Assembly (NCBI RefSeq): GCF_001194135.2 | Contig: NC_069004.1 | Coordinates: forward strand, 21,377,788-21,411,120 | DNA length: 33,333 nucleotides | From: Octopus bimaculoides | Taxonomy: Eukaryota | Direction of reading: 5' to 3' | The notes under the pieces: model-generated | Database searches by the model: none | What the model was told of the DNA's origin: nothing | The model's input: only the letters and a program-made list of their open reading frames with translations | Position numbers and translations under genes: made by a program | Shown here: positions 1,744-33,333 of the stretch, piece by piece | How the letters are laid out: each line of letters starts with the position of its first letter | Numbering within the stretch: position 1 is the stretch's first letter

Positions 1744-1911
1744 CCAACAATTTCGGGTGAGGGAATAAGTCGATTACATCGACCCCACTTGCTCAACTGG
1801 TACTTTATTTTATCGACCCCGGAAGGATGAAATTCAAAGTGAACCTCGGCAGGATCTGAAGACAGACGAAATTCTACTAAGCATTTTGTCCGGCATGCTA
1901 ACGATTCAGCC
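1744..1911 (-). mobile_element. tRNA-derived SINE, family B, B-box region deleted
   Basis: Reverse complement matches the 9663-9877 and 28174-28367 copies (TTTCATCCTTCCGGGGTCGATAAAATAAAGTACCAG module). Confidence 0.8.
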
Positions 1912-5529: not shown

Positions 5530-5748
5530 ATTATGTACTTACAACGAATTAGAGGAAAAACCCGTGTAAACCACCATTTTTCCTGGTTTGTCCATTTATG
5601 CAGGAGCTCTGGCCAAAATGTTATGGTGCATGACCATCATTGGGACATAATTAATGTGTGTAAAGTTTGGTGAAAATCGATTGAGAATTGTAGAAATGCA
5701 TGCATTAGTCAATATGCATACACATACTGTAATTTATATATAGTAGAG
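5530..5748 (+). mobile_element. Possible non-autonomous Helitron/Helentron-like 3' portion
   Basis: GTGTAAAGTTTGGTGAAAATCGATTGAG followed by a CATACACATAC tract and a TTTATATATAGTAGA end resembles such elements. Motif recall only. Confidence 0.35.
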
Positions 5749-5915
5749 TATACGGTGGAGGCTCATAATTCTATTTACAACATTTCACTCGCTACCGTTT
5801 CCTAATTCATGCAGGATTCGCATGTTTACGTATTTACCGCCATAAAAATCATAATCCCTAAATTTAACAGAAAAAAGGCGTGGGTATATTCTATTATTCT
5901 TTTGAATATGTTGAT

Positions 5916-5919
<4 letters not shown>

Positions 5920-5963
<44 letters not shown>
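5920..5963. repeat. (TA)n microsatellite
   Basis: Direct reading. Confidence 0.95.
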
Positions 5964-5966
<3 letters not shown>

Positions 5967-6327
5967 GTGAAATGGATACAGAAAATGAAACAACTTGCAT
6001 TGCGGGATAATTCTCTTCATCAACTACCATCGGGAAGTAATACCATCTTGACATCTTCCGACAGTCTCACGCCCTCTAACGGTGCTGAACAACATGACTG
6101 CTATTAAAGAATGACTAAAGTCTCTGAAACGGTGCGTCCCCGAGGAAAACGAATTTGGCTTTTGAAATCTGCGTTCCAATGAGAAAGTTGTCCGTAAATA
6201 ATAAAACATATATAATTTTCTACGAGAAATAACTCAACTTTACAGTTCTATATTTAAGAGATGAGGAATTATGTAGATTATTTACATTATTTACATTTGA
6301 CGGATATTTGCCATCTTGTTTGTTGTT

Positions 6328-8563: not shown

Positions 8564-8904
8564 TATATATATATATATATATAATTATTAATAAGGAGTG
8601 TGGAGCGAGCAAATTCTTTTGTTACATAAATTTACAATTGTTTCACCGGCATTCGAACTCAAGTGTGTTGCTGTATCATTATATAATATACACAACTATA
8701 GACTCAAAGTGTATCACTAAGTCGATACAATCGAAAACCAATTCATCAGTAAATGGCTGAACAGAATTATACAACATTTTATTGAGTACATATGCATATA
8801 CAATGAATTTGAAAGGAGTATACTTCTGAATATACGAACAATTAAATTGGAATATTCTCCTTTTGGAAAAAAAAAATGAAATATACATGCTGATGCACAA
8901 CGTT

Positions 8905-9233
8905 ATGCATGCATGTATGCATACATACATACATACATACACGCATACATACATACATACATACATACATACAACAGGATACATAACAACCGGTTTGGAG
9001 CAAAGTATGGCTGAACATGGGATCTTGGGGAAAGAATGCAAATCCTTAATTTATATGCTACAAAAGATCACTATCTATACACTCACACACACATACATAT
9101 ATACATACAAACATACATGCACACACACATATATACATAGTACTACATACGTTGTACGTATGCTTGTGTGTATGTGTATGTATGTATGTATGCATGCATG
9201 TATGTATGTATGCATATATGTATGTATGTATGC

Positions 9234-9266
<33 letters not shown>

Positions 9267-9284
9267 TGTATGTATGTATGTATA
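8905..9284. repeat. (CATA)n and (TATG)n microsatellite cluster
   Basis: Tracts at about 8919-8972 and 9166-9284. Confidence 0.9.
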
Positions 9285-9662
9285 GAGTTTACAGATATAC
9301 AATGGAATATTCTATGATTTTGATAATCTGACTGTCAATTACCATGAATGCAAGAATGGAGAATTATAATTTTATTGCTTTGCATTTTTAATTTTCCGAA
9401 TTTCAACTTCATATTTTCATGGATTAGCACGGGAATTTTTATTCGGGTGTAGATGCATAAAAATTCCTTTTACAATTTTCTTCCTCCCATTGGTCTGTGA
9501 TAATTACTTTCTCGTCGTCTGTCTTGCGCGTCAGTATATATCTTGGCGTCTATGTTCGTGTGTAAATGTGGCCACTGCATTGAGTAGTGGCTGACACTTG
9601 AGAGACCTTTCTTTGGGCAAATTTACGGATTGCTTTTCCATCTTGCAGACGTACAAAAGAGT

Positions 9663-9877
9663 AATTGGTTTCAAATTTTGGTACAAGGCCAGCAATTCCG
9701 AGTGATGGACTAAGCCGATTAGATCAACCCCAGTGCACAACTGGTACTATTTTATTAACCCCGAAAGAATGAAAAACAAAGTCGACCTCAGTAGGATTTG
9801 AACTTTGAACGTAAAAACGGTCGAAATGCCGCTAAACATTTTGCTCGGAGAGCTAACGATTCTGCCAGCTCGCCCCT
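9663..9877 (-). mobile_element. SINE family B, full length
   Basis: Minus strand begins GGCGAGCTGGCAGAATCGTTAGC, has B-box-like AAGTTCAAATCC and the central TTTCGGGGTTAATAAAATAGTACCAG module, and ends CCAAAATTTGAAACCAAT. Confidence 0.85.
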
Positions 9878-9883
9878 TTTAAT

Positions 9884-9980
9884 AAAATATGGAGCGCTTC
9901 ACAAGTATGCGTGTCACCCTTGCGCAGTAACCCTGCTAGTCTTCTTTGTATCGTTCGAATTTTAGTATATCTACAACCGA
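9884..9980 (-). pseudogene. U6: U6 snRNA-derived retropseudogene lacking the first ~9 nt
   Basis: Reverse complement aligns without gaps to the human U6 sequence as recalled, from TCGG to ATATTTT, with 16 mismatches in 97 nt by hand count. The ACAGAGA box is mutated to ACAAAGA and the 5' stem is broken. Confidence 0.92.
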
Positions 9981-10477
9981 GTAATTAAAAACACAAACTA
10001 TTACCTAACCGTATGGTTTATACACTTTCTGAAGACAGGAAACAACATTATCTGCTGACTTATTCTATTGTTTTATGTTTATCCTTTTCTTTGCCCTTCA
10101 TCATATGTATCGACCATTGGATTTACATTATGGTTTATTCTGTATTATTTTCAATCTCTCTTTCTTGGTTTTTTTTGCAATATGTAAATATGTTCATATA
10201 AACACACCTACTGGTTATAAGTATAATTCGTAATAATACAAGTTTTCTCTAGCAAATGTATTATATACAAAACTCTGGTGAGCTGACATTCAATAGTATT
10301 GATGTGAGTTTATAGCTGCATATATTATATAAAAATATAGCAATGCTCTTGAATTCGAATGCCTGTACTGCCAGTACTTCTGTATCATCTATAATTGTTG
10401 AGTGCATTTTATTCCAACCTAACCAGGTGCCTCAACTTTAAGTACCTTATTCGACTGAATATTGTTATATTATAATA

Positions 10478-13605: not shown

Positions 13606-13748
13606 CAGCACTGATACTTTATTTATCAACTTCGAAAAAATAAAAGACGAAGTTGACCTCGACTTGATTTGAACTCAGAGCGTAGAGAGCTGGAATGGTT
13701 ATTGCAAAGCAATTTATCTGACGCCTTAACGATTCTACCAATCGACTG
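13606..13748 (-). mobile_element. SINE family B, diverged 5' part
   Basis: GTTGACCTCGACTTGATTTGAACTCAGAGCGT...AACGATTCTACCA matches the family B reverse strand. Confidence 0.65.
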
Positions 13749-18174: not shown

Positions 18175-19695
18175 ATAAAAACGGCATTAATCCCCGAAAA
18201 GATACTTTTGTCTCTAAAAACGGGACCAAAATCCAGCTGCCTTCTGGACAATCCCCTAATAGCTATAGCTGCCCTAATCAAAAGCTTTCAGTTGATCCAA
18301 ATTGATAAGGGTACCACCGAATTAAGGTTTGTTACCCACCCACTCTACAATGTATTGTATGCGGTGGAAATTTCCTTGGATAAATTTGTTAAGGTTTCGC
18401 GCTGGTTAATTGCTTTACCGACTAAACTAACAAATGCCAGCCTGTTTGCAAGTACCTTTGGTAAAATATTAAACTCTACATTCAGCAAAGTTATGGGCCA
18501 AAAATGATCAATAACGTATTCTTTCTTCGTGTCGTTTCTCTTCGGTTCGACTGCCAGCTGCTGTCGACGTTCACCAAGACGTCGGCAAACAAGTTTGGCA
18601 AAGACATATAAAACTCGTGAGGCAAACAAGTTCCGCAAAGACATAAAACTCCTGAGGCAGACCATCCAAACCAAGCGATTTGCTTCTCGTACAACCACTT
18701 AACGCCTTCCTTATTTCAACTGCTGATATGTTTTTTGTTTTTTTTTGTGCAGCATTTCACATCTTCCATCGAATGCCACGGTATGCCGTTCAGGTAGGTA
18801 CAAAAATCCACCATTTCTGTTTCACCGCTCGCCTGAAAAGTTAAGCAAAGTGTCGCTGGAAAGCTGCCTGCACCTAATTGAATAGTATGCGCCCATTCCA
18901 GTTCTTCGTGCCTCTTTCATCCAGCTCCTTCGAACGGCTTGCTTTCCCTCGTATCTTAGAACATGCGCCTTAGTTCTGGCAATACAACCTTCGTATTTTA
19001 TTGATCCAATGCTATGCTATTCTCGTCGCAAGCACGTCGGCTATGGTACTTTTCTAATTGCGTCATTAGTTTCCACGTTATTTTATTTTCCTTAATTGCT
19101 ATATTTTTGCTTAGCAAATAACCAGCTTTAGAGCACTCCACCACCGATAATTGAATATCATCCATGTCAACTACCACCTTATTAATTCACAAATATGGCC
19201 TCCGTAGGCTTTGCACACCAAACACATGTTCAGTTTCCAATGGCCGGGTATCTGTCTATAAGTTGGGTATTTATTTGTCTATAGAATTTGTCTAAGTCGA
19301 CCGATGCAAGTCACCAAATTTGCGTTTTGTGAATCGATCTGTTGAAATTGTGGCCACCCTACATTATTATCAAATTTCCAATATAGATATAATCTGGATG
19401 TCTTCATAGTTGCTCGGTGTCTACATCGGCACAACGACTAGTTGTTAAGAGAATTAAAAATGCTTGAGGAATTTGTGAGGTTTTTACACTCCGTCTCCTA
19501 TCGGATAGCCCTACACAATCCTTGTAGCATCATCTTAGATACTATTCTAGTCTCGTACTAGTACTAAAGAGCGGGGCAATCCCCAGAAGGCTTCTGAGAA
19601 ATTCATCGGAATGTGACATAGACGGCCAATCTGAAGGCACACTTCTTTTGAATCCTTTCAGACCCGGTATCATCGACTTACCGTCCGGGTCCAGG
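18175..19695 (-). mobile_element. Decayed L1/Tx1-type LINE ORF2 (APE C-half, linker, RT N-half)
   Basis: Broken frames give LDPDG..AFRLAVY, PGHWKLN, EGCIARTK, KSLGLDGLP, FWPITLLNVEFNILPKVLANRL and INLDQLKAFD. These parallel the plus-strand element at 30996-33127. Confidence 0.88.
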
Positions 19696-21595: not shown

Positions 21596-22000
21596 ATGTA
21601 TGTATATATGTATGTATATATGTATGTGTGTATATATGTATGTATATATGTATGTATATATATATGTATATATGTATGTATATATGCATGTATATATGTA
21701 TATATGTATGTATATATGTATGTATGCATATATGTATGTATATGTGTATGTATATATGTATGTATATATGTATGCTTGTATGTATATATGTATATATGTA
21801 TGTATATATGTATGTATATATGTATGTATATATGTATGTATGTATATATGTATGTATATAAATATGTATGTATATATGTATGTATGTATGCATGCATGTC
21901 TGTATGTATGTATGTATCCATGTATGTATGTATGCATGCATGCATGTATGTATGCATATATGTATGCATGCATCATGTATGTATGTATGTATGTATGTAT
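21596..22000. repeat. Long complex (TATG/TA)n microsatellite
   Basis: Direct reading; source of the spurious YI/HT/CM ORFs. Confidence 0.95.
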
Positions 22001-22275
22001 AGATTTGTATGTTTTATGTATGTACTCTCATGCATATAGTTGCATATCTAGACGTGCTCATATATGTTTAAATGATAAACTTCTGGAAAATTTTACAGAC
22101 TTTTACAGTTCCAGTGATGGATTGGATCTATAGTCTTCGAATTAGCTTTCTCCTTTCTGGTTTTGAAAGGCCTAATTTCCCAAGATTGTTATTTAGGCAG
22201 TATGTCATATATCACAGGGCCCCAATAATTACAGGCATAAATCTGAACTTGTAATCTGGATAGAATAACTGCAGA
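22001..22275 (-). mobile_element. RLE-type retrotransposon extreme C-terminus and start of 3' UTR
   Basis: LQLFYPDYKFRFMPVIIGAL*...LGKLGLSKPERRKLIRRL*IQSITGTVKVCKIFQKFII*, homologous to the 21330-21420 translation. Confidence 0.75.
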
Positions 22276-28085: not shown

Positions 28086-28173
28086 TAAATCAAAAGATCG
28101 CCTTAATATTTTCGATTTTCATTTTGTTTTCTATATTTTTAATTTATTCCCTTAATATTTTTCTGATATCGCA

Positions 28174-28367
28174 GGCGGCGAGCTGGCAGAATTGTTACCG
28201 CGCCGGGCAAAAACGCTTAGCACCATATCATCTGTCTTTACGTCGCTGGCGTTCATTCTGCCTTTTATCCTTTCGGGTTTCAATAAAATAGTAGCAGTTG
28301 GTCGAAGTAGTCGACTTGCTTCCCCTCACCCCCGAACTTTCTGTCTTTGGGCCAAATTTGAAAGCAA
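28174..28367 (+). mobile_element. SINE family B, B-box region deleted
   Basis: GGCGGCGAGCTGGCAGAATTGTTA...GCCTTTTATCCTTTCGGGTTTCAATAAAATAGTAGCAG...GCCAAATTTGAAAGCAAT. Confidence 0.82.
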
Positions 28368-28875
28368 TATTTTTCGATGTTGCTATTGAATTTGTTCTTA
28401 ATTTTCGATTTTATAAATATTTTTGTTTCTATCGTTAATGCATTTTCCCGGTGAATAACAATTTGTTGTTATTTTGTTGTAGTTTAAGATGGAATATTAT
28501 TTAGTCGATGAAACTGCAAAGTTTGATATTCCATGCACAACAGTCTTTAGTAGTTGAGTGAGATCTCTTCTAACATTTGTTTAGACATTTTTGTTGTTCA
28601 TATTCATGTTGTTGTCGTTAAAGCTTGTATATCAACATGGCTGATGTTGTTTACTGCACTATTTCTATTGTCGCAAAATAACTTTCTATTGATGAATTTT
28701 ACTTCAGTAATTTATCACTTTTTACGTTTGCTGGTGATTTTCCGAGACCTTTAGCATTCAGTTTGGTTGATCTTTACTGGTTTTTAACAATTTTTTGGCG
28801 ATTATGAGCTGTTATTTCAGCGACTGTTTACAACAATAAGTTCCTGATCGTAAATAGATCGTAAATGGACTATTT

Positions 28876-29719: not shown

Positions 29720-32700
29720 ACAGTTCTCGCATTTCCTTTTAGTGTTAATCAGATTATATTCTCATAGAATATCCAATATGCCACGGAAAACTCAGCTGTC
29801 TGAAACTCAGAAAAGAAACGTTTCCAAAGAAAAGAATGAAAGAAATGTTGCTGTATTGGCAAAGACACAACGCCTAAATGAATTTTCTCTCCTTCGAATA
29901 AAAGAAAGCTTAAAAACTAATGATGAAGAAGCAATACGAGGCGTTGCTTCTGAGGCACCAATTGCACTCCCAAGTACATCTGCAGAAAATAGGGGTAAAG
30001 TATCAGCTCAAAATAATAACAGTAATGAATCACCAGATATTACAGACATGGAATCTAGCGCAATCATAGTATCTAAACTCAGCCGTGTGGTTTTTCTGCC
30101 AGAAAAAATTGTCCATATTCTTTCGATCAAGATCGGCTTTATGTCAAAGTAAAAATGTCTCCAACACCTACTCAGAATCTGGCGAGTGGAAAATGCTCCT
30201 GAGAGTGAAGTACAAAGATGCCTTGGGCGTGTGTGGCAACAAAAGATCCACATCATCCGAAGAAAGAAATTTGGAACTATTGAAGTGAAATTTGGGACGG
30301 TAGAAGAAGCTAGATGTAATTCTCCAACCACCCTGAGGAACAACAACTTTTTCTTAATCCCCAGCTATCACTTGCCAAGATTAGGGTGTTGAATGTTCCG
30401 CCAGAAATATATATTACCTGATTAGTGGCGGCGGTCTTGGCAGGTTTAGAAGAAGACGAAGTCAGAATATTAGAGCTCAAGAAACTACCTAAGCAAAACT
30501 GGTTAGGGTTAGGTATGGAACTGACCTTGCAATGCAGGCAGGCCCATATCGACCAGCTGCCCGATCTAATCGATCTCGCGGATGGTACTCACCTGTCAGT
30601 GTTTGTGGAGCGTAGAAAGCCAAAATGCCACACATCTGGATCTGTAAATCACTTAAAGGCTTTATTCCCTAAAACAAGGAATAGTAAAGTCCCACTGCTA
30701 CCAGTGAATGATGGATTTTATAATTCAAGACAAAAACAAAATAGAGACAGAGTGAAAGGAATTTGAGGAATTCATCCTCAAAACCCCCAAGGACAGACAT
30801 TTAATTAGAACATTGTCAAACGTTTATAAAACTATAACTGAAAAATTCCTAGGTAGTGTGGGGATTTTAAAAACATCTGTTGATAAAAGGCTATTAGAAA
30901 AGCCTTTTAAAAATTTTTCACCAGTAGAAAGGCCCGGAACTTCCGGGCTTCTCGAAATCCAAAGTGAGTAACCTCATTTTCTTTGTCCGACTAGCATGGC
31001 TGTTCTGAGAATGGGATGTGTGAATGTGCGTGGCCTGGGATCAGCTTGGAAGCAAGGTCACTTGCTCGACGATCTCAGGTCACTCGATTTAGGTGTAGCT
31101 GCCATTAGTTAAACAAGGATGGCCGGAAAACACGCTCTAGCATCCATTTTCGAGGACTACGAGGTATTCTCATCTTGTTATCTATTGGGGACAGGTGGCG
31201 GTGTAGCAGTTCTACTCCGGAAATCCTTAGATCTCCAAGTACGAGCTATCTTCATGGACCCACATGGTAGGATGGTGGTCCTGGACGTGAAAGGCAGCGA
31301 ATGTGGCGCCTTTAGACTGGTGGCGGTTTATGCCCCAACAGGGGCTGGAAGGCCAGATTTCTTCAGGCGTCTTGAAACATTCTTGGGAACATCTCGCATT
31401 TTAGTACTAGTGAAGGAATTGGAATAGTATTTTGAACGCACAGGACTGTCTGGGTTTAGTACATAGTAGAAGTAGGTGTAAAAGCCTCGAAAACCTGTTC
31501 AGGACTTTCCAGCTTTCTGACAGGTACCGACTGGATTTCCCTGATGTGCCATTATGGATATGGAGCAACCAAAGCAGGTCATCCAGATCGTATTTAGATA
31601 GAGTATTTCTTAGGTCAGAGGATAGGGATAGCATAGGTTGTCCACAATTTAAATTGGTTGGCTACACAGATTACAAATTTGTGAAATGCCCAGTCGATTT
31701 AGTTAGGACCCGTAGACAGGGACCCGGTTACTGGAAGTTGAATGTGTCCGTATCGGCTCACAAAGACTACAGGGACCGGATTAGCGAACTANNNNNNNNN
31801 NNNNNNNNNNNNNNNNNNNNNNNNNNNNNNNNNNNNNNNNNNNNNNNNNNNNNNNNNNNNNNNNNNNNNNNNNNNNNNNNNNNNNNNNNNNNNNNNNNNN
31901 NNNNNNNNNNNNNNNNNNNNNNNNNNNNNNNNNNNNNNNNNNNNNNNNNNNNNNNNNNNNNNNNNNNNNNNNNNNNNNNNNNNNNNNNNNNNNNNNNNNN
32001 NNNNNNNNNNNNNNNNNNNNNNNNNNNNNNNNNNNNNNNNNNNNNNNNNNNNNNNNNNNNNNNNNNNNNNNNNNNNNNNNNNNNNNNNNNNNNNNNNNNN
32101 NNNNNNNNNNNNNNNNNNNNNNNNNNNNNNNNNNNNNNNNNNNNNNNNNNNNNNNNNNNNNNNNNNNNNNNNNNNNNNNNNNNNNNNNNNNNNNNNNNNN
32201 NNNNNNNNNNNNNNNNNNNNNNNNNNNNNNNNNNNNNNNNNNNNNNNNNNNNNNNNNNNNNNNNNNNNNNNNNNNNNNNNNNNNNNNNNNNNNNNNNNNN
32301 NNNNNNNNNNNNNNNNNNNNNNNNNNNNNNNNNNNNNNNNNNNNNNNNNNNNNNNNNNNNNNNNNNNNNNNNNNNNNNNNNNNNNNNNNNNNNNNNNNNN
32401 NNNNNNNNNNNNNNNNNNNNNNNNNNNNNNNNNNNNNNNNNNNNNNNNNNNNNNNNNNNNNNNNNNNNNNNNNNNNNNNNNNNNNNNNNNNNNNNNNNNN
32501 NNNNNNNNNNNNNNNNNNNNNNNNNNNNNNNNNNNGGCAGATTTGTTTGGCAACCTCTTGACAGATGTCTACAGTAACTGGCAACAGAACGGGAGAATTC
32601 CTATTGCTGTTAGCCGAGGTGTGGTAACACTGCTTAGAAAGGACGTCGACAATGGGGACGTGCTATGAATTTTCGGCCCATAACTCTGCTAAACACAGAG

Positions 32701-33127
32701 TTTAAGATTTTGGCCAAGGCATTAGCGAAAAGTTTGGCGCTTGTCGTTGTCGGAGAGGTACAAACATGCGCAATCCCGAATAGGTCTATCCACGACAACC
32801 TCCATCTTATGCGATACATCGTAGAGAGGGCTGGGACTAAAGTTGGCTTCGGTGGGGCCCTAATCAATTTAGATCAGTCGAAAGTTTTCGACAGGGGAGA
32901 ACATCGCTACTTGAAAGCCGTCCTTAAAGTGGTCGGTTTTGGACACGTTTTCAGAGGCTGGATTGTTGCAATGCACAGCGGCACCTGCTCGATGGTCAAA
33001 GTAAATGGCCAAATATTGGAACCGTTTAGTATTGCACGTTCAGTTCGTCAAGGTTGCCTACTGTCATCTCCTCTGTATGTGCTGGCTCTCGAGCCACTGC
33101 TGCGGAATTTGGAACAGCTAAGAGGTA
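29720..33127 (+). mobile_element. L1/Tx1-type LINE: ORF1 and ORF2 (APE plus RT N-half), 3'-truncated, inactive
   Basis: ORF1 remnants from ATG 29778 with a decayed knuckle CHTSGSVNHLKAL. ORF2 from ATG 30996: GCVNVRGL, ISET motif broken by TAA at 31110, VYAP, GPGYWKLN, then past the gap NFRPITLLNTEFK, LINLDQSKVFD and RQGCLLS. It stops before YADD. Confidence 0.92.
31792..32535. other. Assembly gap (largest of many N-runs; others include 14999-15647, 16716-16991, 22962-23403, 24435-24781)
   Basis: N-runs; lengths are scaffolder estimates. Confidence 0.99.
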
Positions 33128-33162
33128 GTAGTGCGCCTTATAAAGCCATCAAATACGGTGTA

Positions 33163-33333
33163 TTTTCTTTTATTTTTTTATTTGTTTCAGTCATTTGACC
33201 GCGGCCATGCTGGAGTACCACATTTAGTCGAACAAATCGACCTCAGGACGTATTCTTTGTAAGCCTAGCACTTATCCTATCGGTTTCCTTTGCTGAACAG
33301 CTAAGTTACGGGGACGTAAACACACCAACATCG
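33163..33333 (-). mobile_element. SINE family A 3' half, running off the window
   Basis: TTTCAGTCATTTGACCGCGGCCATGCTGGAG...GTTACGGGGACGTAAACACACCAACATCG. Confidence 0.9.

Follow-up and report, generated by a model that had tools for sequence, protein, structure and literature searches.

U6 small nuclear RNA (snRNA) copies were surveyed across vertebrates by Doucet et al. (2015), who described U6 of platypus fused to the long interspersed element (LINE) L2 or to the short interspersed element (SINE) Mon-1, with almost all of the U6-L2 chimeras being 5'-truncated (PMC4476161). Target-site duplications (TSDs) of 1–9 bp were found for 72.5% of 40 platypus chimeras, and in Anolis the partners of U6 were LINEs of the L1-like, L2-like and RTE-like types and, in six cases, AnolisSINE2 (PMC4476161). 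From these data it was concluded that retrotransposons without long terminal repeats (non-LTR) share a general ability to switch to U6. It was further argued that, where the LINEs of a genome are 'stringent', U6 copies take the form of chimeras and not of poly(A)-tailed or 3'-truncated pseudogenes (PMC4476161). Here we describe a U6-SINE unit located on the minus strand of a 33,333-nucleotide stretch of Octopus bimaculoides DNA (contig NC_069004.1, positions 21,377,788 to 21,411,120; the whole of this stretch is hereafter named the window). Read on the minus strand, the unit consists of one TSD copy, U6 nucleotides 10–106, the filler ATTAA, a full-length SINE and the second TSD copy. It is likely that this arrangement was generated as a chimera in a single event of some kind, be it template switching, ligation or read-through.

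As in the U6-retroelement chimeras (Group IV) of Doucet et al. (2015), U6 is located 5' of the SINE, in the same orientation, keeps its natural oligo-U end and is directly joined to its partner. In addition, one TSD surrounds the whole unit and none surrounds its parts, the 3' tail of the SINE is kept and no difference in divergence was detected between the two parts. The platypus U6-L2 and U6-Mon-1 chimeras are similar in that a U6 copy, usually 5'-truncated, precedes in the same orientation a retroelement without poly(A) ('stringent'), in that short TSDs (1–9 bp) flank the whole unit and in that they are attributed to template switching. They differ in the host, which here is a mollusc and not a monotreme. 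Besides, the octopus SINE is full length and preceded by a 5-nt filler, and one ancient locus is compared with a surveyed set of 40. With its truncated U6, its tail-dependent SINE and its short TSD, the octopus locus matches the platypus type closely. Among the chimeras of Anolis carolinensis (U6 with AnolisSINE2, L2 or RTE) there is likewise a union of U6 with a SINE that depends for its mobility on a LINE other than L1, although the host is a vertebrate.

The human and other mammalian U6/L1 chimeras (Buzdin 2002/2003; Garcia-Perez 2007; Moldovan 2019, PMC6789731) share with the octopus unit a U6 5' part, a retroelement 3' part, a common TSD and the oligo-U end. In those chimeras, however, U6 tends to be complete, whereas its L1 partner is truncated at the 5' end and bears poly(A), and the TSDs are longer; furthermore, experiments have demonstrated RNA ligation by RtcB (PMC6789731). 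In the crocodilian SINEU (Kojima 2015, PMC4494074) snRNA-derived sequence was added to a SINE-like 5' end, plausibly by a template switch, but the heads derive from U1 and U2 and the composite is a propagating family with thousands of copies (PMC4494074), whereas no sign of propagation of the octopus unit was seen in the sequences examined. Chimeras produced by LINE template jumps are also known outside mammals, as bipartite and tripartite retrogenes of Magnaporthe grisea (PMC2104539); there the host is a fungus, other RNAs are involved and the U6-SINE architecture is missing. The initial annotation of the window overrated the novelty of the locus, since U6 chimeras with non-L1 LINEs and SINEs had been published (PMC4476161). 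Among the 15 best-ranked papers of a full-text search, none dealt with U6 snRNA together with octopus, cephalopods or molluscs; this does not prove that no such report exists, and the octopus locus is plausibly the first such chimera noted in a mollusc.

Anatomy of the U6-SINE unit

A search of the window with Rfam provided one match to U6 (RF00026). It runs over 9988..9883 of the minus strand, scores 75.1 bits (gathering score 44, E=1.7e-17) and was the sole RNA at the gathering level. Local alignment to the canonical U6 limited the homology to U6 nucleotides 10–106, which correspond to window positions 9980..9884 (minus strand) and are identical at 81/97 positions, whereas nucleotides 1–9 match at only 2/9 positions. 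The pairs of the 5' stem were flagged by Rfam as non-canonical and the stem cannot pair. The catalytic ACAGAGA box (within 9952..9940) has been changed to ACAAAGA. The 3' end of the copy is CCATATTTT (9892..9884), with the natural oligo-T run TTTT at 9887..9884. Because nucleotides 1–9 are non-homologous, the ACAGAGA box is altered and 16/97 positions are mismatched, the U6 copy (9884..9980, minus strand) is a decayed, 5'-truncated pseudogene without its first nine bases. Without these nucleotides and most of the 5' stem-loop, it would have been dead on arrival as a U6 gene. The initial annotation had reported a minus-strand U6 copy with this same 3' end, which was confirmed; its identity as U6 also stands, although the copy taken there for a U6 retrocopy proved to be 5'-truncated at about nucleotide 10.

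The SINE was compared with a 176-nt consensus of the head and core of Octopus vulgaris copies, which is not the consensus of its own subfamily. These copies came from 40 kb of the O. vulgaris genome, reached through two matching proteins and containing several copies of the SINE. The focal SINE aligned to consensus positions 0–176 with 79.4% identity; because the alignment spans the whole consensus, the element is 5'-complete, starting at 9878 and occupying 9667..9878, possibly to 9664, on the minus strand. The 5' end of the family was fixed as AAGGCG... by a young O. vulgaris copy (L127:10143-10375) with a 21-bp TSD (19/21). The head of the focal copy, from 9878 on the minus strand, is AAGGGGCGAGCTGGCAGAATCG and appears after the filler as AAGGGGCGAG, in the same orientation as U6. 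The SINE also has an A-box-like motif (9867..9857), a B-box-like one (9804..9794) and, in its body, a conserved motif (9774..9741), and its tail is ...GGCCTTGTACCAAAATTTGAAACC (9690..9667); no poly(A) tail is present. The tail is homologous to those of a window copy (28174-28365) and of two O. vulgaris copies, running to ...GAAA..AAT. The three other tails go on as ...AATATT; in the focal copy the likeness ends after AAT and the terminal ATT is missing. Its tail homology may extend by 3 nt (AAT, 9666..9664).

The filler ATTAA (9879..9883, minus strand) occupies the 5 nt between the T-run of U6 and the AAGG of the SINE, the gap being 7 nt if counted to GGGG. The full-length SINE that the initial annotation had placed 5–7 nt after U6, in the same orientation, was found as described, with consensus positions 0–176 covered. 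The junction joins the natural 3' end of U6 (oligo-T) to the natural 5' end of the SINE, and the filler itself may be non-templated or a 5' leader of the SINE. From the density of heads of this SINE family in the window (~6.6e-5 per nt per strand) we estimated the probability that an unrelated U6 copy ends by chance at most 10 nt upstream of a same-strand head as <0.1%. A second U6-SINE junction was found neither in the window nor in the 40 kb of O. vulgaris, both of which are weak tests. One 55-residue open reading frame (ORF) runs antisense across the SINE head, the junction and U6. A word-index protein search with this ORF provided no candidates, and 35 matches were obtained among 1.84 billion representative proteins. 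Twelve of them were inspected: in ten the ORF lies antisense to a U6 gene from another eukaryote, and two are unrelated repeat proteins. None of these 12 runs on from antisense U6 into a SINE, which is again a weak test. Numerous short 'proteins' in public collections end in ...KYGTLHEFACHPCAGAMLIFSVSFQF, the translation of antisense U6 up to a TAG stop; these are spurious ORFs (P0073-P0107), which could act as handles for U6 loci in protein-only resources.

The octamer GAGTAATT occurs exactly, and only twice, in the 33 kb of the window, at 9659-9666 and 9979-9986, that is, at both outer junctions; in the orientation of the element (minus strand) it reads AATTACTC. The 3' copy (9659..9666) starts directly after ...GAAACC. 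The 5' copy (9979..9986) lies inside the nominal U6 span of Rfam and overlaps the true U6 homology by 2 nt (TC, 9980-9979, corresponding to U6 T10 and C11), which constitutes a microhomology at the 5' junction; the homology to U6 stops at nucleotide 10, right at the inner edge of this copy. The first three nucleotides of the 3' copy (AAT) coincide with the consensus of the SINE tail, ...GAAA..AAT(ATT), and may belong either to the tail or to the target. The exact repeat at both outer junctions had been indicated in the initial annotation, which did not take into account the position of the 5' copy inside the Rfam span or the double assignment of AAT in the 3' copy.

For the statistical evaluation of this repeat, the boundaries were set independently of it, at the start of the U6 homology and at the end of the SINE homology. 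Of 200,000 random window placements, 0.23–0.34% showed an exact repeat of 8 bp or more no farther than ±2–3 nt from both boundaries, and 1.6% showed one when ±10 nt were allowed. Both flanks are unique in the window. A TSD belonging to the SINE alone had been named beforehand as an observation that would speak against a single insertion; it was looked for, and no separate flanking repeat of at least 6 bp was found around the SINE alone or around U6 alone. A TSD of its own was thus rejected for either part, as no suitable inner repeat of at least 6 bp is available. The idea that the 5' flank is a decayed SINE tail was also rejected, with alignment scores within the shuffle null.

The age of the two parts was estimated from their divergence, which is 16/97 (16.5%) for U6 and 36/175 (≤20.6%) for the SINE, the latter being an upper bound because it was measured against the O. 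vulgaris consensus and not against its own subfamily. No difference was detected (Fisher p=0.52). This equal decay agrees with a joint arrival and favours it; the comparison was able to refute co-insertion and did not. The single integration event claimed in the initial annotation was supported by every test possible within the window.

Origin of the unit

Among the ways in which such a unit could be formed, a single event of target-primed reverse transcription with template switching, giving rise to a bipartite U6-SINE retrocopy, is the one that we consider probable. The endonuclease of a LINE would nick the target at TTTTT/AATTACTC, and the freed ...AATT-3' end would anneal to the AAU near the 3' end of the SINE RNA, the tail consensus being ...GAAAAGAAUAUU; the 3' end of the partner LINE would be expected to match the SINE tail ...GGCCTTGTGCCTAGAGTAGAAAAGAATATT. 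The reverse transcriptase would then copy the SINE RNA to its very 5' end, add or copy about 5 nt and jump end-to-end to the oligo-U 3' end of the U6 snRNA, which would be copied to about nucleotide 10. The end of the complementary DNA (cDNA) would be joined to the upstream target DNA via the 2-nt microhomology (TC), and staggered cleavage of the second strand would produce the 8-bp duplication. A jump of the end-to-end type is proposed because the natural 3' end of U6 is joined to the natural 5' end of the SINE.

Insertion of another window copy of the SINE (28174-28365, plus strand) provides a comparison for the priming step. This copy has its own exact 10-bp TSD, AATATTTTTC, which occurs only twice in the window (28154 and 28366), and, taken with its TSDs (28154-28375), contains 8–10 extra nt between the 5' TSD and the SINE head. 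The targets of both copies read TT/AAT at the presumed nick, and both TSDs start with bases that match the SINE tail (AAT and AATATT, respectively). This coincidence at the start of both TSDs suggests that the nicked target pairs with the RNA 3' end and thereby acts as primer. The 28174-28365 copy shows the same type of target and a tendency to 5' additions.

Of template switching and ligation as ways of connecting the two RNAs, template switching is favoured. Ligation would mean that an RtcB-type ligase linked U6, through its 2',3'-cyclic phosphate, to a SINE RNA with a 5'-OH, and that the product was then reverse transcribed and retrotransposed via the SINE tail. Such a reaction was demonstrated for the human U6/L1 chimeras (PMC6789731). 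It predicts an anatomy and a TSD identical to those observed, and the U6 copy does reach its natural oligo-U end; the loss of the U6 5' end fits both mechanisms equally. RtcB requires an acceptor with 5'-OH, and a full-length transcript of RNA polymerase III begins with a 5'-triphosphate. Since the SINE is 5'-complete, its full-length transcript would not offer the required end, and the five filler nucleotides would find no explanation unless they represent a processed 5' leader, which makes this route improbable here. To the same degree we doubt that the unit derives from a read-through (5'-transduced) transcript, for which a SINE would have to be located 5 nt past a U6 gene or pseudogene at the source locus, the weak T4 terminator would have to be passed and the co-transcript retrotransposed. 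Under this explanation the filler ATTAA would be DNA of the source locus; the T-run and A-rich sequence after U6 (TTTTATTAA) resembles the TT/AAT target of the SINE, and 5' extensions from flanking DNA were described for SINEU-2 (PMC4494074). However, it needs a prior coincidence (a SINE landing 5 nt past the end of U6) plus terminator read-through, and no second copy of the junction was seen in the window, the 40 kb of O. vulgaris or the inspected U6-antisense ORFs, which are weak tests.

If the two parts had arrived in independent events, a U6 pseudogene and a SINE would be adjacent by accident, and the 8-bp repeat would be due to chance, or to a 5-bp chance match extended by the AAT of the SINE tail. 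The AT-rich DNA (34% GC), the three of eight bases of the 3' copy that match the tail consensus and the age of the element speak in favour of this explanation, and the repeat could have been picked post hoc in the initial annotation. It is contradicted by the low frequency of exact repeats of at least 8 bp among the random placements (0.2–0.3% within ±2–3 nt and 1.6% within ±10 nt), by the absence of GAGTAATT elsewhere in the window, by the lack of an own TSD in either part, by the estimate of <0.1% for same-orientation adjacency within 5 nt and by the matching ages. We regard it as unlikely, though less so than ligation or read-through taken singly. It was also considered that a genuine U6 gene had been copied at the DNA level, type-3 promoter included, and had then decayed, the SINE being inserted beside it later. 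The one feature in favour of such a promoter-bearing copy is a TATAAA motif at 10017..10022 (minus strand). This motif occupies -33..-28 from the virtual U6 +1, about where the TATA box of U6 genes sits, and would be expected there by chance in about 1% of cases. Nevertheless, the match at nucleotides 1–9 is 2/9 as compared with 83.5% elsewhere (P=8.8e-5 for at least 7/9 mismatches), the 5' stem cannot pair, and the outer 8-bp repeat and the missing SINE-only TSD would be left unexplained. This origin is hardly credible, and TATAAA, of which 30.4 kb hold 19 examples on one strand and 31 on the other, is most likely a chance match in AT-rich DNA.

Several observations weigh against a single integration by template switching. 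The element is old (16–20% diverged), and small repeats could thus have been made or lost by mutation. Three of the eight bases of the 3' TSD copy are ambiguous, and the tail against which they are judged was defined by one window copy and two O. vulgaris copies. A paralogous empty site was searched for in the window and none was found. The TT/AAT target rests on two insertions. The junction contains a 5-nt filler, and TATAAA is present at the position of the U6 TATA box, with a probability of about 1% in an 11-nt slot. There is a very small probability that numerous loci with differing flanks carry the U6(nt 10–106)-ATTAA-SINE unit or its full-length parent, either as a U6-headed SINE subfamily or as the output of a source locus at which transcription starts from a U6 promoter and passes the terminator. 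Because the known snRNA heads are U1 and U2 in crocodilians, such a U6-headed subfamily would be the first of its kind.

SINE relatives and other repeats of the window

The window has the composition of AT-rich draft eukaryotic DNA (34% GC) and contains N gaps, numerous microsatellites, SINEs and one LINE. Three older, more diverged relatives of the focal SINE are present, at 1744-1911 (minus strand), 28174-28365 (plus strand) and ~13610-13684 (minus strand). In O. vulgaris, tandem SINE copies were observed at L128:12664-12972 and 5729-6110, where the next head starts ~8–27 nt past a tail. This arrangement fits insertion into or beside earlier SINE tails, which resemble the preferred target. 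A second abundant repeat of the window, marked by GACTGCGGCCATGCTGGAGCA, has seven copies (1098, 1673, 7975, 8511, 11953, 12967 and 33197), with none expected by chance, and one of its copies directly adjoins the SINE copy at 1744-1911.

The class of the SINE was analysed in several ways. ARAGORN found no transfer RNA (tRNA) head, whether the window or the O. vulgaris consensus was scanned, and Rfam gave no tRNA match at E≤1; a tRNA-derived head, being recognised by neither program, was rejected. Similarity to the CORE domain was examined with a MIR consensus: the match GGGG.TAAT..AATAGTACC reached a score of 24 against a null of 17±2.3 with a maximum of 28, which is not significant. The OR2 element of O. 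vulgaris has been classed as a CORE-SINE (PMC5804259). The element described here is therefore named no more precisely than an octopus SINE, its promoter-type motifs being A-box-like and B-box-like.

Translation of the SINE head and core, including an octopus SINE consensus, was used as probe peptide and led to proteins of O. vulgaris and O. bimaculoides. The identity to these annotated proteins was 82–95% over ~41 residues. SINE-derived segments (...ELAETLARWAKCLAVFRLPLRSEFKFRRGRLCLSSFRGR) are present in P0108 and P0110 of O. vulgaris and in P0109 and P0111 of O. bimaculoides (loci L127:10001-10351 and L128:10001-10354), internally in P0108 and at the C-terminal end in the other three; one of the proteins bearing them is annotated as 'EF-hand domain-containing protein' and another as 'Cytochrome P450'. 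Such segments represent either SINE exonisation or artefacts of the gene models. Patterns of the SINE head gave no match in the genome-contig or viral-contig collections. The 24-nt body motif TTTCATYCTTTCGGGGTYRATAAA was found exactly in more than 120 JGI metagenome contigs (L001-L120), with a mean GC content of 45%. There it is located inside a different SINE-like repeat of another organism, whose consensus includes GGCACAGTGGTAGAACG..., and the stretch common to this repeat and the octopus SINE comprises just ~30–44 nt. The motif looks like a deeply conserved body domain of SINEs.

A LINE with a reverse transcriptase domain (RVT_1) is located in the window at 29742-33333 (plus strand) and 18212-18540 (minus strand). 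The element is broken by an N gap (31792-32535) and its 3' end lies beyond the window. It shows 75–79% DNA identity to short Logan contigs (runs SRR11869384/85/91/94) and to the ENA metagenome contig ERZ23872315. The contigs reached via reverse transcriptase homologues were either non-octopus ENA contigs or short Logan contigs bearing the LINE only. Three ORFs of the window had no exact match in protein records. The microsatellites at 8900-9290 and 21600-22030, among others, are (TATG)n and (CA)n arrays, which give rise to many Rfam microRNA matches (mir-297, mir-3149, mir-466 and others), all below the gathering score, that are artefacts of simple repeats. A permissive Rfam scan of the window revealed, beyond U6, just microsatellite-driven sub-threshold matches to microRNAs and small nucleolar RNAs.

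Implications for retrotransposition in octopus

One decayed locus changes little by itself, and its interest is modest, as chimeras of this type have been described from vertebrates before. Should an empty site confirm the octopus unit, a lophotrochozoan would join the vertebrates and fungi as hosts of U6-retroelement chimeras, and such a case would support the published claim that reverse transcriptases of non-LTR elements jump to U6 RNA as a general habit. In genomes where LINEs dependent on a specific 3' tail predominate, chimeras would be expected as a main route of U6 pseudogene formation. The octopus lineage is known for large SINE expansions, and a genome-wide census of these chimeras in octopus could serve to date and fingerprint the activity of its LINEs and SINEs.

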